Shown piece after piece: positions 11,327 to 60,648 of a stretch of DNA of 64,000 nucleotides. Where the stretch lies: NCBI RefSeq assembly GCF_001194135.2, contig NC_068983.1, forward strand, positions 143,277,221 through 143,341,220, in the 5' to 3' direction. The position numbers and the translations under genes were made by a program. The DNA comes from Octopus bimaculoides (Eukaryota). The notes beneath the pieces are model-generated. The model worked only from the letters and a program-made list of their open reading frames with translations. It did no database searches and was not told the DNA's origin. The first letter of the stretch is position 1. Every line of letters starts with the position of its first letter.

Positions 11327-11571
11327 CCCTTTCATTACCATATTTTTAATGAAATACACTGCCTACGATTTTCAATTAATTTTGAAAATAATCAAGAATT
11401 TGGAGAGATTTAATAAGATAATTTTCTCATTATTAAGCTGATGTTTGGAACATAAAAGGTTTTTACATTAAATTGCAATGAAAGATTTTTATATAAATAT
11501 AAACAATTTAAAACAAATAATTTTCTATCACAAAACCACGGGTGGTTTCAGTTGCATTTGTATCAAAAGGG
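11327..11571 (+). mobile_element. piggyBac-like MITE
   Basis: TTAA|CCCTTTC ... AAAAGGG|TAAT; homologous in inverse orientation to 50923-51137. Confidence 0.7.
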
Positions 11572-14269
11572 TAATGCAAGTTATTCATGAATTAAGCTTT
11601 TCAATACCTTGATTCATCAAATAGACTATCATTAACTTCAACTAAGATACAATCAACAGAGGATAGGTTGATATGATAGACACAATGTTTATGTCAGAAG
11701 GTCATAAATGTTTATAGACACGATGTTTATGTCAGAAGGTCATCACCTACATGTGGTCAGTTTCATTACTAATCAGTGACAATTTAACACTCCATCACTA
11801 TATAAAGAGCTCTTAATTCTTTTTTTTTTTCTTGAATGACTTCATCAGAAAATGAAGGACAAAAAGGCAGTGTCCATAACTTGTTAGGGCCTCTGAGACT
11901 GGAGGGAGAAAGGGAAGATATCCTTACACCAGAGACCTGGCTTGAGTGGACTCTGCTAGAGGCACTTATTCCTGAAAATTTTGTCTCCTAACAATGAAAA
12001 CTTGTTGCTGTGAGCAAGAGATATCGATATAAGATATCCGAGCCTTCTATAACCACAAACAGGAAATTTGCAAAACAAACTTTTTCAACATTGATAAATT
12101 GAAGCAAATGATAACTGGGGTTGGATTATCAATGACAATTGAGGTTATAAGTTGAATAAAAAAAAAACAAAGGAAGAAAAAAATGATGAGTATAGCGCTA
12201 AGTTGTGTCAAAGACAAAGCAAATTATAGAAAAAATATTTCATCAACCACAATACAAGCAAAATGACCAAAACAAATGGAGATGAGATTTCTTACAATTC
12301 AATTTTGAGAACTGTTTCAAGATAACTCTACATCGCTGACTTAACAAATAACTGACCGAAATTGATGAAAAGCAAAAAAAAAAAGAAAGAAAAAAAAAAG
12401 TAGTTTAATTAATTAGCAAAAAGTAAAAATATTTCAAGCAGAGTTCTCTATAATGATACTTGAAATGCTTGATATTTCTTCTTACGGTACTCTCACATAG
12501 TTCAGTTTTCTTTTTTTTTATTGAATCGACTCTTGATAATACAAAACCATTTCTAGTATCCACAAATCCTAGTGATGTGGAAGTTTTATTAGCTATTTAT
12601 TATTTCCAATGAACATTTTTCTCTTCTCACTATGTATGTGTGTATACACCTACACATGCATTTATACATATGTGTATAGGTGCAGGCATAGCTGTGTGGT
12701 TAAAAACTTCACTTCCCAACTGCATAGTTTCAGGTTCAGTTCCACTGAGCAAAGTATTTTCTACTATATATTTACTTTGACAAGAATTTTAATATATTTT
12801 TCATAGAGATTAAAACAATGTTAAAGCCAAAGCAAAGTGAAACACTTTAAAATGAATTTTATCATCATTTATAAGAAATAAAATGGAAAATAATTTGTTC
12901 TATGATGAATTTGAAATTCATTCAACACTTCTAATCTTTATGTCATATGTACACTAACAAAAGAATGAAAGAAAGTTGATTCATTCTGGATCAGCCCTGA
13001 ATTACCAGGTCTGTGGATCAAGGACATTTCAGCTGCAAATATCTGCACTTGTTTTACTTTTAGATATTGTATCTAGGACTAAATCATGCAATGTGTCTTC
13101 CCTTTATTTTTAAGTAAGGATTGATTAAAGAGGGATCTGAATGCTATTTCTAGTAGATCGAGCAGCTACACAAAGTTGTAATTAAAATTACAATAATGTT
13201 TTCATTTCTTACAAGTGATGGCAAAACTGATGACATTCTCATTGGATTTCAATAGGAACAAGACTGTAGAAATTCGTTATTGGAAACAGCATTGGTTAAA
13301 AAATAGTATTCTGTATATCTTACTTAATGCAGATATACTATAGAATACACAAAACTGATTCAATTTCCATAATTTTACCTGTTGTACTATTGTACCTGTT
13401 AACTATACTGTAACATAATTACTACACTAAGTAAAAGACCAGCTTATATTGTCTAAGAATATTGTTGAATGCATCAATTGCATAATACAGATACATATAT
13501 TATTTATCACTGAATAGCTAGAAAGCAATGATAAGATACACTGGATTTTAACTCAGAACAGTTGATTAATGACCCTGATACTGTGATGTATTAAGCCTAA
13601 CTTACTAATGACACCATTACTAATGACAACCATTTCCTATTTTTCTTTTATCAAAATGTGAAACCCAATAAATATTTCACAAAAAGGTTGCTTGTTTCAA
13701 TAAAGATTGTTAGTTATACATACAACTGGCTTCTGCAGTTTTTTTCCCCTCTACCAAATTCTAGTTAATCCAAGGCTATGGTGAAAGACACTTGTCCAAG
13801 GTACAGCAAAATGGCATCAAACATGGAACCACATGGTTGCAAAATGAGCTTAATGACACAGCAAAGGCTAAGTTGACTTCAGTGGAATTTGAACTCAGAA
13901 TGTAAAGCTGGAAGAAATATTGCTAAGCATTTTGTCCAATACTAATGGTTCTGCCAATACTAATTGTTGCCCATGACAACAAAGTTAGACTAGATTTACT
14001 GTGCACTCAACTGGTATTCATCAATTCTGGAAAAATGAATAGCAAAACTGAATCTAATAGGATTTGAACTCAGAATGTAATCAGACATAATATTATATAC
14101 TCTGTCCAGCACTCAAGTGATTTAGTCATCCACTGTTTTAACAACAATAATAATAATGCTTTCTAATTTTGGTACAAGACTAGTAATTTTGAGGGGAGGG
14201 GGCAAGTTGATTACATTAGATCCAGTACTTGTCTGGTTCTTTATTTTTATCAACCTTGAAGGTCACTCT

Positions 14270-15193: not shown

Positions 15194-15523
15194 CCTTACT
15201 GGCACTTGTGCTGGTGGCATGTGAAAATACATTCGAGCAAAGTCATTGCCAGTGCAGCTGGACTGGCTCCTGTGCAGGTGGTATGTAAAAAACACCACTT
15301 GAGCGTGGCCATTGCCAGTACCGTCTGACTGGCTCTTGTGCTGGTGGCACGTAAAAGTACCCACTACACTCGTGGAGTGGTTGGCGTTAGGAAGGGCATC
15401 CAGCGGTAGAAACTCTGCTAGATCAGATTGGAGGCTGGTGCAGCCATCTGGTTCCCCAGTCCTCAGTCTGATCATCCAACCCATGCTAGCATGGAAAGCA
15501 GACGTTAAATGATGATGATAATG
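15194..15523 (+). mobile_element. RTE LINE 3' UTR fragment with (GAT)n tail
   Basis: Inverse match to the 3' UTR of the 34595-36530 RTE; ends ccatgctagcatggaaagcagacgttaaatgatgatg. Confidence 0.88.
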
Positions 15524-15815: not shown

Positions 15816-16001
15816 CTTCGTGCAGGTGACACATAAAAGCACACACTACACTCTCTGAGTGGTTGGCGTTAGGAAGGGCATCCAGCTGTAGAAACTCTGC
15901 CAAATCAGATTGGAGCCTGGTGTTGCCATCCGGTTTCACCAGTCCTCTGTCAAATCGTCCAACCCATGCTAGCATGGAAAGCAGACGTTAAATGATGATG
16001 A

Positions 16002-16005
<4 letters not shown>
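15816..16005 (+). mobile_element. RTE 3' tail inserted within an (AT)n tract
   Basis: Same tail; (AT)n on both sides (15789-15815 and 16004-16032). Confidence 0.88.
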
Positions 16006-17427: not shown

Positions 17428-18326
17428 ACTATTTGGAAGGTAGACAAAACACAAACCCCTGCTCTATCTGTAGAAACTCTATAAGATGTACCCAGTGTAA
17501 GCTATGGACACATAAGAGGTGCAGCAATATCAAAGGAAGGCTAACTAGGAAGATAGTTCTTGTATGTGGCAGATGCTCAGGAGCAATAAACACTGAAAAT
17601 GTGCAGAAAACCACTTTTGCCACATTCCAGGGAGAAAAACTAGAAGTAGATGATAGCTTCCGTTATCAAGGTGACCAAGTTAGTAACGGGGGAGGGTGTG
17701 CTGAAAGTGTAGCTGCTAGAATAAGAACAGCCTGGGCAAAGTTCAGAGAGCTCTTACCTCTGCTGGTGACAAAAGGCCTCTCACTCAGAGTAAAAGGCAG
17801 ACTGTATGACGCATGTGTACGAACAGCCATGCTACATGGCAGTGAAACATGAACTGAGGACATGCGTAAGCTCGCAAGAAATGAAGCTAGTATGCTCCGA
17901 TGGATGTGTAATGTCAGTGTGCATACTTGACAGAGTGTAAGTACCTTGAGAGAGAAGTTGAACCTAAGAAGCATCAGTTGTGTGCAAGAGAGACGATTGC
18001 ACTGGTATGGTCATGTGACAAGAATGGATGAGGATAGCTGTGTGAAAAAGTGCCACACCCTAGCGGTTGAGGGAACCTTTGGGAGCGGTAGACCCAGGAA
18101 GACCTGGGATGAGTTGGTGAAGCACGACCTTCAAACATTAGGCCTCACCAAGGCAATGACTAGTGACTGAGACCTTTGGAAATATGCAGTCTGTGAGAAG
18201 ATCTGGCAAGCCAAGTGAGACCATAATCCGAGGTCTCTGCCAGGGGTGTAGCCAGCCCACTTATGCATACTTTTCCTTCATTGGACACTAAACTTTGCTT
18301 GCAAAGACCTGTTGGGGCAAGTGAAA
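17428..18326 (+). mobile_element. 5'-truncated RTE-clade LINE (RT C-terminal half with PHD-like finger, start of 3' UTR), runs into gap
   Basis: ORFs 17433-17852 and 17946-18170: SFRY(L)GD, RIRTAWAKFRELLPLL, LHGSET, RRLHWYGHV.RM, GRPRKTW; stop at 18216-18. Confidence 0.92.
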
Positions 18327-18745
18327 NNNNNNNNNNNNNNNNNNNNNNNNNNNNNNNNNNNNNNNNNNNNNNNNNNNNNNNNNNNNNNNNNNNNNNNNNN
18401 NNNNNNNNNNNNNNNNNNNNNNNNNNNNNNNNNNNNNNNNNNNNNNNNNNNNNNNNNNNNNNNNNNNNNNNNNNNNNNNNNNNNNNNNNNNNNNNNNNNN
18501 NNNNNNNNNNNNNNNNNNNNNNNNNNNNNNNNNNNNNNNNNNNNNNNNNNNNNNNNNNNNNNNNNNNNNNNNNNNNNNNNNNNNNNNNNNNNNNNNNNNN
18601 NNNNNNNNNNNNNNNNNNNNNNNNNNNNNNNNNNNNNNNNNNNNNNNNNNNNNNNNNNNNNNNNNNNNNNNNNNNNNNNNNNNNNNNNNNNNNNNNNNNN
18701 NNNNNNNNNNNNNNNNNNNNNNNNNNNNNNNNNNNNNNNNNNNNN
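18327..18745. other. Assembly gap
   Basis: N run. Confidence 1.
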
Positions 18746-20469
18746 ATATATATATATATATAGATTAGCACATTTGTGAACAATGATTTTAAATATAATT
18801 ACTGATTAACTAATCAGTAATGATCTTATGAAGGACTGATTGAAACAAAGCTATATTGAGAACTTTAACTATGAAATATGCTAATAGTCCAAAACATTTT
18901 AAAAATATTTATTGTGGTAACATACTTTTAATGTAATTGATAAGATCTCAGTCAAAGTTTAGGATATTACTGTAATATCTTCCTTTTACTTTTAGAAACA
19001 ATGTTGCTAATATTGTAAGTCAGTCAAACTGATATTTCATTTATCTGCTGTGTGTTATACAGACAATCAGAAACACTAACAGTGAGTAATTAACCCAGTT
19101 GACTTCAAGAGAAATATCTATCATATCTTTAGTTGTCCACAAGGAATTGGACTAAGCACAAAGTAACAAAACCTACAAACTCCATCACTGAGATGTTTAT
19201 CTTATGTTCCCATGGCACCTACTGATAATGAATTAGTCTAGGCCATTGAGAGTTAAAAATATTTTCTAGGGACATAGTGTGGTAAAGGTAAAATAATACA
19301 GACTGTTGACCCATTAACTTGACGAATTCAGCTTAGTGTCTCTAAGGGAAAATTAGAAAGGAAGTAGGAAAGCTGACAGGATGGAGAGACTAAAAAATGT
19401 TTTGAAATTAAAAGTTATGTTTTTGACTAGGCCCAAGGATAATCTTTTGCAGGGGAAATGTATAGGCAATTGATTTAAAGCAGGATATTACTAGCACTTT
19501 TTAAATAAACCTAGGGAGGATAAAAGTCAAAGTTATCTTTGGTAAGATATAAAACTAAGAATATAGGCAAAGCAAACAAAGGAGCCACTATATGGAGGTA
19601 CCAGGTAGAAATAAATAGCAGTCAAACTTCCCTCAAATCAGACCCTGCTAACTTAAAGTATACAGTAGATAATGTAGTTCTACAAATACTATCTGAAAGC
19701 AAGATAAGATAATTATGGTTGGAATGCTTTTGATCACAGGAGTTGCATGTTCAGGGCTTGCCTAGGACTAAACATACCTGAATGTAAATGGAAGAAATTA
19801 AATAGTATAAGGAATTTAGTGTGGTGATCTAGTCACTTCTGCCAATTTCATTGACCTAATTTTACGATTAGTATGAATAAGCATATGCAGAATTTAATGA
19901 AAAATATCACTTCAGCTGTCAAGGAATCAGAGATTATATGTAATGGTAGAGAAGCTTAAATGATAACAATTATATTAAAATTTTTAAGTCTATCTGGGCT
20001 TGATGTCTTTGTATTTTGCACTAGGGGGTAGGGGATAACACATCTGATGCTTCATTAATTCATTTCTTTAAAAATAATATATCTGCTTCAAAAATTTCTT
20101 TGACAAGGCAATAATAATAGAATTAAAAGAAAGGAACAAAATGGCCTGATGGGGGTAGAGAAAGTAGGGAAGGGTTCATTCTTTTTTCTATTGAATACAT
20201 GTTATTTCCTTGATGTGCTATTGTAGGAAAATAATAGTTACTGAGATTTTGTTATTATGCTGGCTTATCTGAAGGGCTGAATTAATAATGACATTCCAGT
20301 GACAAAGAAGGTATTACTTGACAAGATGATGGAGTAATTTTTGGAGTAAACATTGAACAAAATTAGACATGAGTCATTAATGTGACAATCTTTTAAATAT
20401 CTAAATATTAATACTAAAAATATAACCCTGCCAAAATCTACAACAATAACAAAAATGCTTTAAATTGTG

Positions 20470-20472
<3 letters not shown>

Positions 20473-20561
<89 letters not shown>

Positions 20562-20562
20562 A
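20473..20562. repeat. (GA)n microsatellite
   Basis: Direct reading. Confidence 0.97.
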
Positions 20563-21452
20563 TTGCTCTTTGTCATTGTCATTTGGGTTTCTATTATTAG
20601 CAACAATAGATTAAAAGCCAACAGCATACAAATGCTACCACAAACATGAGTAAAGGTTAAAACCTTTTTCTCTTTTTTTTTTGTAACCTGCAGGGCTATT
20701 TATGACATTATTTATAGACCAGTCTTCCAAAACCACAAACCAAACATATTTACTTAAAGAAGTAAATGAAAAAATACTTTAAATAACTTAAAGTCATAAT
20801 TGAACATTAAAACCTTACAAATACCTTGAGTATCCCTTCGTTTTTATAAATGTACTTAAATGTAAGGAGAAATAGTTTTTCTTAAGGATAGCTACCTTTT
20901 GAAAAAATGTAATTTTACTATCATCTTTGAGCAAATAAGCTTAAGATACAATTTTTAGATGGTATAGTCATGAAGATATTATAGATTAAGCATATTTTAG
21001 TGAAAAAGCCAAAAAAGAATCTTTAAAATTAAAAAAAGTGGGATAAGTAAATAAATTTTAAAGTACGCAAATGAAAAAAAAAGAACCCTACTTAGAGAAA
21101 AACCCTGGAATAAGGATACTCTAATGGGAGACCTAGCAAGTTAATCCAAAGGTTAGATAGCATTGTCATAAGAAAAATCTAATGACCAATGCTATTGGGA
21201 TGGGCATAAAAAATAAAAGAGTGTACAATATTTAAAAGATTGGTGTACAACATTAACACAACCAACTGGTTATGTTGTGACCATTAAGAATTGGGTCTAG
21301 GAAGACTAATGCTGCAGTGAAATGTCACGCACCTGAGGCTGCAGGGATGGCAAGCCGCAATCTAAGGTAGTAGTAGTAGCAGTAGTAGTAGTAGTAAGAG
21401 AAGTCAGGGTGGTAGTTGGACGGAAAAAGAGCCACAGGTGAGCAGGTAGCAG

Positions 21453-21616
21453 TCAAACTGATGACGACTGAGCAGAGGAGGACCAATCCAGGCTCTCCGT
21501 GTAGGACACATAGGTGGGGAGTGCCCAGCTGTCCCGGAGCTGTACAGGCTGATACTTGGCACCGCTGTCACGGTCTTTGGGGCGAGTGTAAGTGCTAGTA
21601 GTTGTTATGTACTTAC
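21453..21616 (-). CDS. NKAIN: Putative alternative NKAIN C-terminus by read-through of the exon donor (54 aa, ends SSSV*)
   Basis: Frame stays open past the donor to TGA at 21455-21453: CKYITTTSTYTRPKDRDSGAKYQPVQLRDSWALPTYVSYTESLDWSSSAQSSSV*. About 55% GC by hand count (88/161) with several CpGs, against roughly 30% GC intron background. Confidence 0.55.
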
Positions 21617-21677
21617 AGCTCTCATCTTCTTCTGTGTACATGTAGATGGTGATGCAGGAAATTATAAACCCAAAGAA
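21617..21677 (-). CDS. NKAIN: NKAIN-family 61-nt coding exon (end of last TM segment plus acidic patch)
   Basis: Acceptor tgttttcttttcttctag|, exon FFGFIISCITIYMYTEEDES plus 1 nt, donor |gtaagt. Joins in phase 0 to the 37845 exon. Resembles vertebrate NKAIN L.GF..ACY.....EEEDS, whose exon I recall also being 61 nt. Confidence 0.9.
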
Positions 21678-23749
21678 CTAGAAGAAAAGAAAACAATTCA
21701 TTAACATAACAGTTTAAAATCAACCAACCAAAGCCACAAGATACATTGAATACTAAAGACATAAGACAGCTTCTGTAGTGGTTGTTGTTCTTTAGTCTCA
21801 AGATAGAACTGATCAAGCAGGACTATGATCAAAGACATTCCAGCTATGACCCTCCCATATTTTATTACAAACATTGTATATATAAGGCAACATTATCTAA
21901 TATAATCTTTTAAGCTGGTAGAACATGATTTTAAGGAGAATTGGTAGCTATTTCTAGCAGACAGAACAGTCACATAAAAGCCCTTTCATTGGCTTCATTC
22001 AGTTTCTATTTTAAATAACTATAGTTAGTCAACTTGCTAGAAATAGCAACCAAACTTTCCTCAAATTACACCATGAATAATGCAGTCCTGGATACATTAT
22101 ACATGTAAAATAGATGTATGGTTTGCAGCTGGAACACTTTATTATAGAATCTGCTCAATTAAAGAGGTTTTAATTTTGTCAAATCATCATCATTCAATGT
22201 GTTTTCCATGCTGACATGGTTTTGATGGTCTGACTGGAACTGGTAAGCCAGAGAACAGCATTAGGATCCAGTCATCCATTTTAGTATGATTTCTACAGCT
22301 GGATGCCCTTCCTAATGCCACCCACTTTAGAGTGTACTGGGTGTTTTTTACATGTCACTGGCAAATGATTACAATAAAATCGAATTACTTAATGCAACTG
22401 AGCAAAGAAAATATAACTGGTCTCTTAGAACTGTACATCAGGTTTGACAATTGGTCTTGTAGTGTTGATGCTGAAGGGTCAACACAGAAGCCAGTCATTG
22501 TGTAGAAGCTCAAAGGTGTAGTTTCCCCAATCCTTTCAACATGACTACAAGACTAGAATTTAGGATAGTAGAATAATGAAATACTCATCATTTTGATAGT
22601 GCTGCCACAACTTACAATAGTGAATTACACCAACCTGAAATACCTACTTGGAGCTTGGGGGAATCAAAGTCTTTTGTATATAGTCACAATGCAATCCTAA
22701 AGACAGGATAGGAACTGCAAAATTCTTGACTAATTTTCCAGTTTATTAGTGTTGGATAGAGCACAGTGGTTACTGCAGGTACCTGAAAAGTACATTAGTC
22801 ACTGCACAATAGAGAATTTACTGCAGATAGCAGCTGTTACTGCACAATATATAACGGCACATTAATCATTATACAATACAATCATCACTGGAAACCATAG
22901 TGGCTACAACACAGAAGAGTAACCAAGGAAGTGGAGTATGTAAATATATATGTGCAATGCATAAAGTATATATGTATGCAAAAGTCAGACTTTGTAACGG
23001 GGGGTATGCTGATAAATACTTCAGAGAAGTGGAGGTGATTGTAGTAGTAATAAAAGAAGCAGAGAAAGGAAACTATGTTAATGAATTAGTGAGGGAAACT
23101 ACTGGATGAAGTCAATGATTTTTGTGTACATAGCAGCAGTATTATCCCATAAATGTGAGCAATACTCCAGTCAGGAGTCTTTCCTGAGTCTTATTGAAAG
23201 TCAGAAACTAATTGGGTTTGAAGTATTTCATGGCTCTGAAGTGGAGTCCTAACCTTTGTGATGCTGTTTTAGCAATGTTATGTGTTAGGTTACCATAAGA
23301 AATCATCAGAAATTGCAAAAGATATCAAACGCTTCAATTCCAATCAGCACTAATCATTTCCAAAATTCTAAAGTTATTGTTCCTAAATATATAATATCTC
23401 AGGTTCTAACAATGCACAAAACCTATACACTACTATATCATTAATTTTGTCTTTGGTCGTTTGACTTTTTGCTATTGAAGTGAAATGTTAGAAATTATAC
23501 AATAAACAGCTGAACATAATTAAAATATTGATATTATCAACATACAAATTGCCTTAAATTTTTTTTTAAAAAAAGCAGAGACAGATAATTAGCAATTAAT
23601 AAATAAATGTATAACATATTTGACAAGTATTCTATGTCAGTTTTAGTTTACTACACACATACTAACATACTGTAAATGTATACTGTATGAATATAGTAAA
23701 GGTGTTAATACACAAACATTTAGACTAATCAATACATGCTTATATTGAA

Positions 23750-25183: not shown

Positions 25184-25338
25184 AACACATGGTAGTTCAA
25201 CAAGCTATGTCTGGTTCACACAATAAAAGAGTCTATTAAATCACTTGACTTACTGGAAATTACAGCCAAAACACTGTCTTCTTAAAAATGAAAGGCTACA
25301 TTGGGCAATGCAGTCCCTAGTGAAAAAATATCAGGATA

Positions 25339-25505
25339 GCACCCACTACACTCTTGGAGTGGTTGGCATTAGGAAGAGCATCCAGCTGTAGAAACATTGC
25401 CAGATCAGATTGAAGCCTAGTGCAGCTTCCTGGCTTGCCAGTCCCCAGTCAAAGTGTCCAATCCATGCCACCATGGAAAACAGACGTTAAACAATGATGA
25501 TGATG
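25339..25505 (+). mobile_element. RTE 3' tail nested in an older retroposon fragment
   Basis: Interrupts a 25240-25570 copy of the old repeat seen at 2385-2690 and 32885-33075. Confidence 0.8.
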
Positions 25506-25669
25506 GTTACAGTTGTAATGCCTTTGACTACTCATCTGATCAATCAGAGCTGATCTGGACTTAAACAGTAGTAATACCTCTACACATGACAGCTCAGTTT
25601 ACCAAGGAGCATCTCAGTCACAGACACCAACTAGTATCTTCTGAGAATGTCACTGGCAACATAGTCACT

Positions 25670-27788: not shown

Positions 27789-28392
27789 NNNNNNNNNNNN
27801 NNNNNNNNNNNNNNNNNNNNNNNNNNNNNNNNNNNNNNNNNNNNNNNNNNNNNNNNNNNNNNNNNNNNNNNNNNNNNNNNNNNNNNNNNNNNNNNNNNNN
27901 NNNNNNNNNNNNNNNNNNNNNNNNNNNNNNNNNNNNNNNNNNNNNNNNNNNNNNNNNNNNNNNNNNNNNNNNNNNNNNNNNNNNNNNNNNNNNNNNNNNN
28001 NNNNNNNNNNNNNNNNNNNNNNNNNNNNNNNNNNNNNNNNNNNNNNNNNNNNNNNNNNNNNNNNNNNNNNNNNNNNNNNNNNNNNNNNNNNNNNNNNNNN
28101 NNNNNNNNNNNNNNNNNNNNNNNNNNNNNNNNNNNNNNNNNNNNNNNNNNNNNNNNNNNNNNNNNNNNNNNNNNNNNNNNNNNNNNNNNNNNNNNNNNNN
28201 NNNNNNNNNNNNNNNNNNNNNNNNNNNNNNNNNNNNNNNNNNNNNNNNNNNNNNNNNNNNNNNNNNNNNNNNNNNNNNNNNNNNNNNNNNNNNNNNNNNN
28301 NNNNNNNNNNNNNNNNNNNNNNNNNNNNNNNNNNNNNNNNNNNNNNNNNNNNNNNNNNNNNNNNNNNNNNNNNNNNNNNNNNNNNNNNNNNN
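27789..28392. other. Assembly gap
   Basis: N run. Confidence 1.
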
Positions 28393-34594: not shown

Positions 34595-36530
34595 CATCAT
34601 CATCATCATCATCGTTTAATGTCCATTTTCCACTTTGGCATGGGTTGGACGGTTTGACTGAGGTCTGGAGAGCCAGTGGCTGCACCAGGCTCCAATCTGA
34701 TCTGGCAATGTTTCTATAGCTGGATGCCCTTCCTAACTCAAACCGCTCCAAAAGTGTAGAGGGTGCTTTTTACATGCCACCGACACAGGAGTCAGTCCGG
34801 TGGGCCAGGCATCAATCACGTTTGGATGGAGCTTTTTATGTGCCACCGGCACAAGAGCCAGTCAGGGGTACTGGCATCGGCCACGATCGGTTGGTGCTTT
34901 TACATGCCACAAGCACAGGAGCCAGTCAGGCAGACCTGGCATNNNNNNNNNNNNNNNNNNNNNNNNNNNNNNNNNNNNNNNNNNNNNNNNNNNNNNNNNN
35001 NNNNNNNNNNNNNNNNNNNNNNNNNNNNNNNNNNNNNNNNNNNNNNNNNNNNNNNNNNNNNNNNNNNNNNNNNNNNNNNNNNNNNNNNNNNNNNNNNNNN
35101 NNNNNNNNNNNNNNNNNNNNNNNNNNNNNNNNNNNNNNNNNNNNNNNNNNNNNNNNNNNNNNNNNNNNNNNNNNNNNNNNNNNNNNNNNNNNNNNNNNNN
35201 NNNNNNNNNNNNNNNNNNNNNNNNNNNNNNNNNNNNNNNNNNNNNNNNNNNNNNNNNNNNNNNNNNNNNNNNNNNNNNNNNNNNNNNNNNNNNNNNNNNN
35301 NNNNNNNNNNNNNNNNNNNNNNNNNNNNNNNNNNNNNNNNNNNNNNNNNNNNNNNNNNNNNNNNNNNNNNNNNNNNNNNNNNNNNNNNNNNNNNNNNNNN
35401 NNNNNNNNNNNNNNNNNNNNNNNNNNNNNNNNNNNNNNNNNNNNNNNNNNNNNNNNNNNNNNNNNNNNNNNNNNNNNNNNNNNNNNNNNNNNNNNNNNNN
35501 NNNNNNNNNNNNNNNNNNNNNNNNNNNNNNNNNNNNNNNNNNNNNNNNNNNNNNNNNNNNNNNNNNNNNNNNNNNNNNNNNNNNNNNNNNNNNNNNNNNN
35601 NNNNNNNNNNNNNNNNNNNNNNNNNNNNNNNNNNNNNNNNNNNNNNNNNNNNNNNNNNNNNNNNNNNNNNNNNNNNNNNNNNNNNNNNNNNNNNNNNNNN
35701 NNNNNNNNNNNNNNNNNNNNNNNNNNNNNNNNNNNNNNNNNNNNNNNCTCTCAAGGCACTTACACTCTGTCATGTATGCACATTGACATTACACATCAAG
35801 AGGATCATACTAGCTTCATTTCTTTCAAGCCTACGCATGTCCTCAGCATTCATGGCCCATGTTTCACTACCATGTAGCACGGCAGTTTGCACACATGCAT
35901 CATACAGTCTACCTTTCACCCTGAGTGAGAGGCCCTTATTTGCCTGCAGAGGTAGGAGCTCCCTGAACTTTGCCCCAGCTATTTTTACTCTAGTAAGAAT
36001 AGCCCCCACTACAGACCTGGTCGCCTAGGTAGCAGAAGCTATTAACTACTTCTAGTTTCTCCCCCTGGTATGTGATGGAATCTGTTTTCTGTATATCTTC
36101 AGTGTTTATTGCCCCAGTGCATCTGCCACACACAAACTATTTTCCTGGTTAACCTTCCTCTGATATTGCTGCACCTTTTATGTGTCCATAGCTTACACCG
36201 AGTACATTGTATGGAGTTTCTAACCACACCTTTTCTACAGATCAAGCAGAGCCATCTACCTGAAGCGGGTTGTGATTTGACAGAGTTCCTACTAGGACTT
36301 AGGTTTTTGCTAGGTTAATCCTAAGGCCCGTCAATTCTAGACCTTGCTTCCACATCCTGAACTTTGTCTCCAGTTCTGATAGTGACTCAGCTATGAGAGC
36401 AAGGTCGTCAGCATAGAGGAGCTCTAAGGGGCAGCCTGTCTTGAATTGCTCTGTTACTGCCTAGAGGACTATAATGAATAAGAGGGGGTTGAGGACTGAT
36501 CCCTTCCATCTTACCTCTTGTACGCAACAT
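34595..36530 (-). mobile_element. 5'-truncated RTE-clade LINE of the same family, spanning an N-gap
   Basis: LYADDLAL at 36404-36415, GSVL.PLLFI upstream, Cys-rich finger, AKFRELLPL, LHGSETW; 3' UTR and (GAT)n tail at 34595-34942. Confidence 0.9.
34943..35747. other. Assembly gap inside the RTE LINE
   Basis: N run. Confidence 1.
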
Positions 36531-37844: not shown

Positions 37845-38057
37845 TGAAAACAAACACTGCACAGCAGCATGAATGAATTCAACATAATAATATTCTACAA
37901 GACACCCTTCTACAAATTCTTCAGGTGGAATTGGTCTACTGGTTTCTCCATGGTAATTTTTCTCCCATGTGTTATTTGTCACCTGACAACCAATGCCATG
38001 TTCTAACCACCAGCTTTTATTCTTTGTTCCAATATTTAAAATGTATAATTCTCGTGT
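37845..38057 (-). CDS. NKAIN: NKAIN-family internal coding exon (extracellular loop plus start of last TM segment)
   Basis: Minus strand: acceptor gatttcttaattttacag|, open frame of 213 nt (phase 0/0) TRELYILNIGTKNKSWWLEHGIGCQVTNNTWEKNYHGETSRPIPPEEFVEGCLVEYYYVEFIHAAVQCLFS, donor |gtaagt. SWW.EHG.GC and GCL.EY.Y.E.H...Q match NKAIN family motifs as I recall them. Confidence 0.92.
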
Positions 38058-39721: not shown

Positions 39722-40017
39722 ACGCGTGTGCGCGTGTGTGTGTGCGTGTGTGTTTTCATATCTTGGCATTGCTTGCTAACTGTATTCAAACACCTCCATC
39801 ATACAAGTGGTGGTATTTGTCTACAATCTTCCATGGAAGTAAGTTTTGCCACTGTGTTGTTCATTTCCAAAGGACTAGGAGGGCTTGTGTGTTGGCAACA
39901 GGAAGCACATCTGGCCATATAAAGTCTATCTCACTCATTCAAGCATGGAGAAGTGGGTGTTAAATTGATGTGTGTGTGTGTGTGTGCAGGCATGCTTGTG
40001 TGTTATTTTATTTCATT

Positions 40018-40160
40018 TCATTATCATTTAATGTCTGTTGTCCATGCTAGCATGGGTTGGAAAGTTTGACCAGGCTGATAAATGGGAGGCTGCACAAGAC
40101 TCCAGTCTGATTTGGCATGATCTTCTACAGCTGAATGCCCTTCCTAATGCCAACCATGCC
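40018..40160 (-). mobile_element. RTE 3' tail
   Basis: tcatttaatgtctgttgtccatgctagcatgggttgg...gcccttcctaatgccaacca. Confidence 0.8.
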
Positions 40161-41529
40161 AAAAATGTAATGAATGTATACAATCGAAATAAAGAATCTA
40201 ACAATAGCAAACCAAACAGAAAGCCTCTATGTCAGGAGTGGGGAACCCTTGCACCTGAAAGTGATATTTTGGCTACCATTCATATTTGAAACCACCAGCT
40301 GACAGAATTTCAGAAAACTCATATGAAGGTAATTATTTAAGCATTGATACCAAAACTTATAACTTAATATAGCTGCATTCTTAAGAATCAATGAAACTAA
40401 AGATTCAATGTTTGTGGCCCTGCAGATTCTTATGTACTGGTAAATTTCCCTACACCCACTGTTTTACATGGTCATTCAATACCAGACAAATTCCCTCGTA
40501 TCACAATAGAATTGATTAGCATTTCTTTGGCTTACAGTTCAGTATTCAATTCCTCTCAAGGGAGATACTACTGTAATAACAAATGTTCTATCCAAGAAGA
40601 TATTATTTTCCTCATTACTTTCTAAATGTTATAAAAACTACAGTAAAACACCAGGCTGTTTAAAAATCCTTTTGACAAAGAACAGATTAGCTTAGTGAGA
40701 ACAGCATAGAATCAACTGAAGACTATAATGTACAGTTACTATTAACCTCATTGTTGAAATTTCTATATAATTCACTGAAGAATATACAGGAGTAAATTCT
40801 TTTTGTTTCTTCTACATATATAGGCTACAAGATAATAAACACTTATCAGTTATCAATATCATTACTATTGTTGGGGAGGTGGAAGTATAACAAATTCTCT
40901 CATTACTTGTTAATCAAGAAAGAGGGATAGAGTCTACGACCTTTCTGAGACTTTTCTAAGACTAGTGGGATTAATGTGAGTGACACTCAACTTAAACATC
41001 TCTAGTTCAATAATTGCAGGAAAATGGCAGATAATGAGGGTACTAAGGAGTTTAGTCCCAATATTTACAACATGTAAGTTCTGTAAAAGGCACTCAAGGG
41101 CCAAATAATAACCATGTGAGGCAATGGTAGGCATGTGAGGCCTATTACTATATAATACCTATTTACAGCCGAGTTGATTTGGCCAATGAGAGTTGAATGT
41201 CTTTTGCCAAGGAAACAGTGAATGCCAATACTAGAATCTGAGTCAGTGACTCTTTCACCTTACTAACAGGCACCAATGACTACCCCGAAGACTATAAAGA
41301 TATAGGTTACCAAAAGATTATGAAAAGAGTTCCTAAAAACATTCTAAGGTTTAACAAAAGATCTTTCTTACAAAGCCTGCAATTCATTCTACTATACATT
41401 ATATACACATATTTTTACCTTTCACAGACATTATTGATTTCATTAATATTGAAAGAGTTTTCTTTGATCTACAATTAAATATAGATGTTGCCTAGTAGCA
41501 AATGTCCATATATCTTTAGATGCAATACT

Positions 41530-42330
41530 TCAGTTTTTTTTATATATTGACCAATTTATATGCATATATGCATACACACATACATATGCACATACATGTA
41601 CATATACACACACGTACATATACACATATATGCACACATGTACATATACACACACATACATATACACACATACGCACACATGTACATATATACACACATA
41701 TACATACACATGTACATATAAACGCATGTACATATACACACACATGTACATATACACACATATACACATGCACGTACATATACACACACACATGCATATA
41801 CACATATACACACATATGTACATATACACACACACACGTATACACACGTACATATACACACATACATATGCGCACATGTACATATACACAAACATGTACA
41901 TATATACATACATATACATACACATACACANNNNNNNNNNNNNNNNNNNNNNNNNNNNNNNNNNNNNNNNNNNNNNNNNNNNNNNNNNNNNNNNNNNNNN
42001 NNNNNNNNNNNNNNNNNNNNNNNNNNNNNNNNNNNNNNNNNNNNNNNNNNNNNNNNNNNNNNNNNNNNNNNNNNNNTGTACATATACACACACACATGTA
42101 CATATACACACACACATGTACATATACACACACACATGTACATATACACACACACATGTACATATACACACACACATGTACATATACACACGCGTACATA
42201 TACACACACATGTACATATGCACACACATGTACATATGCACACACATGTACATACACACACACATGTACATATACACACATACATATAAACACATACATA
42301 TACACACACATGCAGAAACATGTACCACAC
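41530..42330. repeat. Compound (CA/TA) microsatellite-minisatellite with a ~20-bp unit tgtacatatacacacacaca, containing a gap
   Basis: Direct reading; the long ORFs here are low-complexity artefacts. Confidence 0.95.
41931..42076. other. Assembly gap
   Basis: N run. Confidence 1.
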
Positions 42331-45300: not shown

Positions 45301-45524
45301 NNNNNNNNNNNNNNNNNNNNNNNNNNNNNNNNNNNNNNNNNNNNNNNNNNNNNNNNNNNNNNNNNNNNNNNNNNNNNNNNNNNNNNNNNNNNNNNNNNNN
45401 NNNNNNNNNNNNNNNNNNNNNNNNNNNNNNNNNNNNNNNNNNNNNNNNNNNNNNNNNNNNNNNNNNNNNNNNNNNNNNNNNNNNNNNNNNNNNNNNNNNN
45501 NNNNNNNNNNNNNNNNNNNNNNNN
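45301..45524. other. Assembly gap within (AT)n
   Basis: N run. Confidence 1.
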
Positions 45525-60201: not shown

Positions 60202-60648
60202 NNNNNNNNNNNNNNNNNNNNNNNNNNNNNNNNNNNNNNNNNNNNNNNNNNNNNNNNNNNNNNNNNNNNNNNNNNNNNNNNNNNNNNNNNNNNNNNNNNN
60301 NNNNNNNNNNNNNNNNNNNNNNNNNNNNNNNNNNNNNNNNNNNNNNNNNNNNNNNNNNNNNNNNNNNNNNNNNNNNNNNNNNNNNNNNNNNNNNNNNNNN
60401 NNNNNNNNNNNNNNNNNNNNNNNNNNNNNNNNNNNNNNNNNNNNNNNNNNNNNNNNNNNNNNNNNNNNNNNNNNNNNNNNNNNNNNNNNNNNNNNNNNNN
60501 NNNNNNNNNNNNNNNNNNNNNNNNNNNNNNNNNNNNNNNNNNNNNNNNNNNNNNNNNNNNNNNNNNNNNNNNNNNNNNNNNNNNNNNNNNNNNNNNNNNN
60601 NNNNNNNNNNNNNNNNNNNNNNNNNNNNNNNNNNNNNNNNNNNNNNNN
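60202..60648. other. Assembly gap within (AT)n
   Basis: N run. Confidence 1.

Follow-up and report, generated by a model that had tools for sequence, protein, structure and literature searches.

Alternative 5' splice-site choice gives a molluscan NKAIN a conserved second C-terminus with a putative PDZ-binding end

Introduction

Can the sequence directly beyond a splice donor be intron and protein at once? The question is raised by an NKAIN gene on the minus strand of a 64,000-nt stretch of the Octopus bimaculoides genome (contig NC_068983.1; hereafter the window, numbered from its first letter), in which the reading frame of a 61-nt exon runs through the GTAAGT of its own donor. NKAINs are multi-pass membrane proteins of neurons that are reported to bind the beta1 subunit of the Na,K-ATPase (Gorokhova et al. 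2007, as summarised in PMC3808344); the interaction is known for the mouse and fly proteins only. These neuronal partners of the pump are conserved, and what they do at the molecular level is still unclear.

An original prediction, made from the DNA letters alone, had proposed that this frame encodes an alternative cytoplasmic tail, that the tail ends in a class I PDZ ligand and that it belongs to a composite internal/terminal exon of cephalopods. Here we report that the frame is coding sequence under selection, that a cuttlefish produces the tail by using the more distal of two donors on one exon, and that homologous tails occur in gastropods and bivalves. We favour a reading in which a two-donor switch adds a selected tail that would dock on PDZ proteins, and give it, as a whole, a probability of about 0.7. 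All NKAIN features described below lie on the minus strand of the window.

Results

The read-through frame is coding sequence

The window contains two exons of the gene (Table 1; a slash marks a splice site throughout). The upstream exon is bordered by an acceptor, ttttacag/, and a donor, /gtaagt, and joins the 61-nt exon in frame. Together the two match the Pfam family NKAIN (PF05640) over profile positions 95-193 of 206, with E = 4.5e-19 and 69.1 bits against a cut-off of 25.9. A tblastn search with the cuttlefish NKAIN P0001 also finds the upstream exon (38057-37845, E = 7e-44), and at the protein level the two exons are about 90% identical to those of the cuttlefish, whose NKAIN transcripts are the nearest relatives found; this value fits a fairly distant relationship between the two cephalopods. 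The 61-nt exon encodes the last transmembrane segment and an acidic patch, EEEDS. The loop ahead of that segment comes from the 213-nt exon. An N-x-T/S sequon (NNT in the window, NDT in cuttlefish, NTS in abalone) and several cysteines are conserved in it, which suggests that the loop is extracellular and would place whatever follows the last helix in the cytoplasm.

What follows it, if the donor is not used, is an open frame. The exon-final T and the adjoining GTAAGTAC are read TGT-AAG-TAC, that is C-K-Y, and in T/GTAAGTA[CT] eight bases are at the same time splice signal and coding sequence. T/GTAAGTA is kept in cuttlefish, in Haliotis and in the loci L002, L012 and L013. The predicted 54-codon frame, running past the gtaagt to ...AQSSSV and a TGA at 21455-21453, was recovered at the same coordinates; its product includes the peptides DSGAK, YQPVQLR and DSWALPTYVSYTESLDWSSSAQSSSV. 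The segment is 54.3% GC and holds 6 CpG (observed/expected 0.51), whereas its 1-kb flanks are 29.6% and 35.2% GC with CpG ratios of 0.09 and 0.03. When 21200-21700 was searched against the window with blastn only chance 12- to 26-mers matched, and none of the window's copies of a ~170-bp interspersed repeat overlaps the tail segment, so the description of this piece as a GC-rich, CpG-retaining and non-repetitive island stands.

We evaluated coding constraint against L001, a cuttlefish-type genomic contig whose 61-nt exon is identical to that of cuttlefish transcripts and which shares the read-through frame, the GTAAGT and the TGA with the window. The two tails agree at all 54 of 54 amino acids while their DNA carries 18 synonymous and no non-synonymous differences (dS 0.74, dN 0), 17 of the 18 at third codon positions. 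Scored on the same differences, the other two frames are neutral or worse. The -S-S-V-stop is kept, and the codon for the serine at -3 has changed synonymously. As the transmembrane exon has a dN of 0.064, the tail is the better conserved part of the protein. Within 10 kb on either side, blastn aligns the window with L001 over a single block, 21679-21255, which starts exactly at the acceptor. We conclude that the read-through tail is genuine coding sequence under purifying selection at the amino-acid level. The prediction of a genuine alternative C-terminus is borne out by these values and by the homologous tails of other molluscs described below.

Other frames and the plus strand at this place also hold open reading frames (ORFs) of 53-60 amino acids, as might be expected if the tail were a chance ORF, a fragment of a transposon or the shadow of a gene on the opposite strand. 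The substitution pattern, however, fits the minus-strand NKAIN frame only, the segment has no repeat match in the window and no match in Rfam, and every homologue directly adjoins the NKAIN transmembrane exon. Together with the layout of locus L012 and the mRNA contig L014, both described below, the substitution pattern refutes this explanation.

One exon with two donors

Evidence on splicing came from cuttlefish RNA-seq assemblies, the sources of which include SRR25097173 (Sepia esculenta larvae); the protein cluster concerned also holds an entry named 'NKAIN [Acanthosepion pharaonis]'. In the transcripts L005-L009 the proximal donor is joined to an exon encoding FDFIGGFD...LQPLY, and in L010 to an exon that begins STSANDEMEF... 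and opens a long tail. The proximal donor is therefore functional.

A further contig from the same 90% identity cluster, L014 (protein P0085), has the alternative structure. It is 1153 nt long with a complete ORF of 242 amino acids. Its upstream introns have been removed, the 30 nt before the 61-nt exon being those of the preceding exon, and the GTAAGT is kept. The contig contains the tail, which differs by a single Q-to-E change and ends ...SSSV, followed by TGA. At 100 nt after the stop, ...GCAGCCTCAG jumps to TTGACTTCATTGGAGGATT, the 19 nt with which the FDFIGGFD exon begins. The latter sequence is absent from the 20 kb of genomic L001, where the continuation is GTGCGTGAC; the string GCAGCCTCAG/GTGCGTGAC is identical in the window and cuttlefish and sets the end of the exon in the window at 21333. 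In cuttlefish, L005-L009 (proximal donor) and L014 (distal donor) share the downstream acceptor, TTGACTTCATTGG..., so that the isoform arises by alternative 5' splice-site choice, which gives an exon of 61 nt or, on the window's coordinates, of 345 nt. We infer that the octopus splices in the same way. The proposed switch between tails is thus seen in cuttlefish in both of its states, with the proximal donor used in L005-L010 and skipped in L014.

Table 1. NKAIN features on the minus strand of the window
Feature	Position	Strand	Length	Sequence and remarks
Upstream NKAIN exon	37845..38057	-	213 nt, 71 codons	TRELYILNIGTKNKSWW...AVQCLFS; 5' boundary approximate
Acceptor of the 61-nt exon	directly before 21677	-		ttttcttttcttctag/, ends ttcttctag
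Short exon form	21617..21677	-	61 nt	FFGFIISCITIYMYTEEDES plus 1 nt (phase 1)
Long exon form	21333..21677	-	345 nt	distal donor 284 nt beyond the proximal
Proximal 5' splice site	21611..21616	-		GTAAGT, context GCT/GTAAGTAC
Alternative tail coding sequence	21456..21617	-	54 codons including the split TGT	CKYITTTSTYTRPKDRDSGAKYQPVQLRDSWALPTYVSYTESLDWSSSAQSSSV
Stop codon	21453..21455	-		TGA after ...AQSSSV; same place in cuttlefish genomic DNA and mRNA
Untranslated end of the long exon	21333..21452	-	120 nt
Distal 5' splice site	21327..21332	-		GTGCGT, context GCAGCCTCAG/GTGCGTGAC; CAG/GTGCGTGA at 21332
Conserved island round the distal donor	21300..21365	-	~65 nt	~95% identical to cuttlefish

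The distal donor lies in an island of conservation (Table 1), around which the remaining sequence after the stop has many insertions and deletions relative to cuttlefish; the island stands out also against the dS of 0.74 nearby. The island contains CAG/GTGCGTGAC and a CTGCAG...CTGCAG pair, and is probably made up of the splice site and regulatory sequence. Folding of the post-stop island gave z-scores of -1.07 and -0.43, and Rfam returned no match to it; the distal donor accounts for it better than an RNA structure would. A (TAC)10 microsatellite at 21367-21396 (GTA on the plus strand), detected by Tandem Repeats Finder, lies in the untranslated part of the long exon and is absent from the cuttlefish orthologue.

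The original prediction had taken the exon for a composite internal/terminal one, in which leaving the GTAAGT unused leads to cleavage and polyadenylation in the intron and makes the tail exon the last. The conserved block that reaches about 80 nt past the distal donor, to 21255, would suit such an arrangement, as would an AATAAA 204 nt after the stop in Haliotis and a bivalve-like mRNA contig, L011, that runs 650 nt past the stop with no junction to the FDFIGGFD exon. Against it, L014, the sole tail-bearing mRNA from a cephalopod, is spliced onward at CAG/GTGCGT, from the equivalent of the donor at 21333, and this site is identical in the window. Neither AATAAA nor ATTAAA follows the stop for 1555 nt in the window (19898-21452, minus strand) or for 1951 nt in cuttlefish (L001 10337-12287), and both stretches are AT-rich. 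A composite exon is therefore improbable as the source of the tail, and this part of the prediction has been abandoned in favour of the two-donor exon; intronic polyadenylation may nevertheless operate alongside it or in some other lineages. Past the stop, the window has its first ATTAAA at 1555 nt and its first AATAAA at 2540 nt, where one such hexamer per ~270 nt would be expected at the ~70% A+T of these post-stop stretches. Their scarcity may reflect selection against premature polyadenylation within the intron.

The contig L011 is unusual in its own right. It derives from SRR6474597 and represents a full-length bivalve-like NKAIN mRNA, in which (around 1100-1270) GC replaces GT at the proximal donor, ACTA/GCAAGTAC, read S-K-Y. 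A frameshift precedes the end of the tail, and the ...MR..C...GNVSPV-TGA of its clade goes on in the +1 frame. This variant is either an assembly error or real.

Cuttlefish NKAINs have at least five kinds of C-terminus (P0001, P0081, P0080, P0089 and P0085): ...LQPLYSGAVVEPLD; ...LQPLYSYQCE; the FDFIGGFD exon with a long tail; the long STSANDEMEF... tail ending in a run of histidines; and the SSSV tail. Each type of tail carries a P-x-Y motif, namely QPLY, PPSY or LPTY.

An old tail with a conserved core

We searched 1.84 billion representative proteins exhaustively with a profile and obtained 37 matches to the tail, which always follows the same exon and the CKY junction. Their common frame is CKY-x4-STY-x-RP...Y-x-P[VI]...R[DN]SW-x-x-PTY[VI]S[YF]-x-[DE]S-x-[ED]W. 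In our alignment of the tails (A4) the CKY is invariant, as are the P, T and Y of the core, with its R, S and W nearly so, and the core R[DN]SW-x-x-PTY[VI]S[YF] is far better conserved than the terminus.

Automatic gene models that include the tail exist in Haliotis asinina (XP_067667465.1, ending QSEA), Pomacea canaliculata (isoform X2, XP_025092282.1, LVGL), Tegillarca granosa (KAJ8322288.1, TAEI), Sinanodonta woodiana (KAL3888158.1, IQLI) and Batillaria attramentaria (KAG5699932.1, LVEP). All five share the exon, the CKY junction and the conserved core with the window but differ from it at the C-terminus, where none has a class I PDZ ligand; the entries come without description or experiment. 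Further carriers are many unnamed ORFs and loci from marine invertebrates, including a TARA plankton scaffold. In 20 kb of one of the loci, L012, three upstream exons are followed by the 61-nt exon with T/GTAAGTA, a 46-residue tail ending QSSL-TAG and, 9 kb further on, the FDFIGGFD exon. Since gastropods and bivalves have the tail too, it is older than the split between cephalopods, gastropods and bivalves, and the cephalopod framing of the original prediction was too narrow.

The H. asinina model requires a comment. On CM074528.1 (L004, ~11556-12210), XP_067667465.1 joins ...YYYVE straight to LLGFVVSC... and so omits the conserved (V/F)IHAAVQCL, which the genome encodes at 11556-11590. This skip is likely an alternative or mis-called donor.

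Outside the molluscs, the vertebrate ORFs found, among them one from tuatara, continue as ...EEEDSCK.. beyond the donor and lack the RDSW..PTYVSY core; the EEEDSCK likeness reflects nothing more than the donor consensus in translation. The resemblance to an insect P-M-Y-V-S-Y motif that the original prediction suggested is not supported, the nearest sequence found being the QP[LMIV]YV of the canonical spliced tail in other invertebrates. No named insect protein was among the search matches, but isoforms may hide in the 50% and 90% identity clusters, as P0085 did, and this absence therefore carries no weight. We also considered the read-through tail as a duplicate of the canonical one and rejected this: hhalign gave only a non-significant match of five columns, LPTYV against QPxYV.

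A candidate PDZ ligand at the C-terminus

The window's tail ends -S-S-V-TGA, a form of the class I pattern [S/T]-x-[V/I/L], and the end is the same in cuttlefish genomic DNA and mRNA. We grouped the tails into 16 clades and compared their last residues, most of which come from predicted proteins. A C-terminal [ST]-x-[VIL] was present in 9 of the 16, compared with 3.4% of internal positions in the same tails (binomial P ~6e-10 with clades treated as independent, although they share ancestry). The ends of the nine are SSV (two coleoids), SKV (L002), [VI]S[PA]V, SPV, TGV, SEI, TSL, [ST]KL and SSL; the [VI]S[PA]V form is kept in 8/8 members of a bivalve-like clade. At the DNA level the ends hold for the window, cuttlefish, L002 (NSKV), L012 (QSSL) and L013 (STKL). 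These class I ends follow linkers that cannot be aligned and differ greatly in length, which is the pattern expected of a selected short linear motif.

The true end of some tails is masked in the protein set. The ORFs P0004, P0021, P0069 and P0030 overrun the actual TGA and read it as W, a TGA=Trp code having been applied to eukaryotic contigs, and this hides the C-termini SSSV, NSKV, STKL and LVGL.

The core may act separately from the end. The window's LPTY resembles an LPxY site for WW domains, and the other two tails carry QP[LM]Y and PPSY. From its conservation, RDSW-x-x-PTYVSY would have to have a partner of its own.

Weighing the evidence

Several observations weigh against the reading we favour. 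The splicing evidence consists of cuttlefish transcripts, and the downstream acceptor exon lies outside the window. The distal junction is represented by one Logan contig with only 19 nt beyond it, and that contig is the one example of the tail isoform against 46 for the canonical and 41 for the long-tail form, so the isoform may be minor. Its stop lies 120 nt upstream of the exon junction in the window and 100 nt upstream in L014, a distance at which nonsense-mediated decay (NMD) would be invited in vertebrates. At the C-terminus, 7 of the 16 clades lack a class I end (Haliotis QSEA, Pomacea LVGL, Tegillarca TAEI, Sinanodonta IQLI and others), and the clades are not fully independent. Finally, full-text literature searches returned no paper that ties NKAIN to PDZ proteins, and no PDZ partner is known.

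The first of these groups of observations bears on whether the peptide matters at all. If the long form were a poison extension, its premature stop would send the transcript to NMD and tune NKAIN dosage, and the peptide would be functionless; a stop more than 50 nt before the junction is compatible with this, as is the small number of assembled contigs in which the isoform appears. We regard it as very improbable. A poison extension would require no more than a stop and regulatory sequence, whereas here all 54 codons are constrained, different mollusc classes share the peptide motif despite divergent DNA, and the residues at the C-terminus are not random.

The second group bears on the terminus. 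Of the predicted class I end, the SSV-stop stands in the window and cuttlefish and has counterparts in other clades, while as a general feature of the tail it fails in the clades named above. That the terminal S-x-V is a PDZ ligand is the best single guess for the end, at roughly even odds at best. The alternative is that the core does the work, through WW or Nedd4 proteins at LPxY, through tyrosine sorting or phosphorylation or through contact with the pump, and that the last residue is a signal for export from the endoplasmic reticulum or nothing specific. The superior conservation of the core speaks for this, as do the clades without a class I end and the P-x-Y of the other two tails (QP[LM]Y in the canonical, PPSY in the long), which hints at a common function unrelated to PDZ domains. 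It does not explain why [ST]-x-[VIL] is enriched at the very C-terminus amid unalignable sequence of varied length, or why [VI]S[PA]V is retained throughout a bivalve-like clade and persists downstream in a shifted frame in L011. We consider this alternative unlikely, though it deserves to be taken seriously.

The rest of the gene and of the window

Other upstream NKAIN exons, and the FDFIGGFD and STSANDEMEF exons, were not found in the window by tblastn or by a fuzzy pattern search. They lie outside it or, conceivably, inside the gap at 18327-18745. Cuttlefish transcripts and locus L012 do contain the N-terminal transmembrane region (FDFLGYMWAPI...). With the 74 residues of exon and tail alone, neither a Pfam scan nor a word-index search gave a match; the word index failed to return even the identical cuttlefish ORF and is uninformative.

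Six runs of N (18327-18745, 27789-28392, 34943-35747, 41931-42076, 45301-45524 and 60202-60648) mark the window as gapped draft sequence. The ~170-bp repeat looks SINE-like, with copies 72-88% identical in both orientations at 15338-15522, 15826-16005, 22183-22358, 25338-25509, 34601-34780 and 40014-40172. The 61-nt exon has one of these copies about 500 bp upstream, and spurious ORFs in the repeat read ...TCH[QR]H[KR]SQS.... A second repeat of ~480 bp occurs in two copies that are 80% identical, at 17433-17952 (plus strand) and 35748-36222 (minus strand). A 139-residue ORF in the first has only a sub-threshold match to a PHD finger (E = 0.0098), and the repeat is probably a retroelement fragment.

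Discussion

These data allow us to propose a mechanism for the NKAIN gene of the window. Use of the proximal site (T/GTAAGT, 21616) would carry the frame into an exon beyond the window, FDFIGGFD... or STSANDEMEF... in cuttlefish. Use of the distal site (CAG/GTGCGT, exon end 21333) would instead yield the 345-nt exon, with its 54 codons and stop, and turn the downstream exons into 3' untranslated region (UTR). The predicted product is an NKAIN whose last transmembrane helix is followed by the core KYQPV...RDSW-x-LPTYVSY...S-L-D-W and a free -S-S-V end. Such an end could dock the complex of NKAIN and the Na,K-ATPase beta subunit on class I PDZ scaffolds, in which case the choice of splice site would decide whether that complex can be anchored.

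A wider proposal is that this switch is ancient, at least mollusc-wide and possibly lophotrochozoan-wide, and that by giving the NKAIN/beta complex a PDZ-docking end and the RDSW-x-x-PTYVSY module it places or retains sodium pumps at membrane domains such as synapses. We advance this tentatively and regard it as possible at well below even odds. If true, it would offer a first mechanistic handle on the role of NKAIN proteins. Taken together, the conserved tail, its core and the PDZ-type end in many lineages lead to a testable hypothesis, namely that the anchoring or trafficking of the NKAIN-pump complex is regulated.

The tail appears to be an undescribed but ancient NKAIN isoform, with a defined splicing mechanism and a plausible function. 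Full-text literature searches found no description of it, and a search on NKAIN splice variants gave nothing relevant, while automatic gene models already include it. Gene models are also corrected by these results: the tail exon is internal and has two donors, and more exons follow its stop codon, an arrangement that is often thrown out as an NMD target during automatic annotation.

Within its own family (PF05640; vertebrate NKAIN1-4 and Drosophila NKAIN), the gene shares the domain match, the arrangement in which the last helix and EEEDS lie on a short phase-1 exon that is followed by the FDFIGGFD exon, and the possession of several alternative C-termini. C-terminal splice variants have reportedly been described for mammalian NKAINs. 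Among the vertebrate sequences found, none has a detectable equivalent of the read-through tail.

Two groups of known systems resemble the proposed switch. Splicing at site C of PMCA (ATP2B) and of the C2/C2' cassettes of GluN1 sets whether a subunit ends in a PDZ ligand. As in NKAIN, splicing there swaps the cytoplasmic C-terminus and adds or removes S/T-x-V/L-COOH; the proteins are unrelated, however, the NKAIN switch would act on an accessory of the pump rather than on the pump itself, and its PDZ end is putative. Composite internal/terminal exons with intronic polyadenylation are known from immunoglobulin mu, in its secreted and membrane forms, and from calcitonin/CGRP. There too the donor of an internal exon goes unused, and an alternative C-terminus and a stop come from the sequence immediately past it; in the cuttlefish NKAIN, by contrast, a second donor is used and a normal exon follows as 3'UTR.

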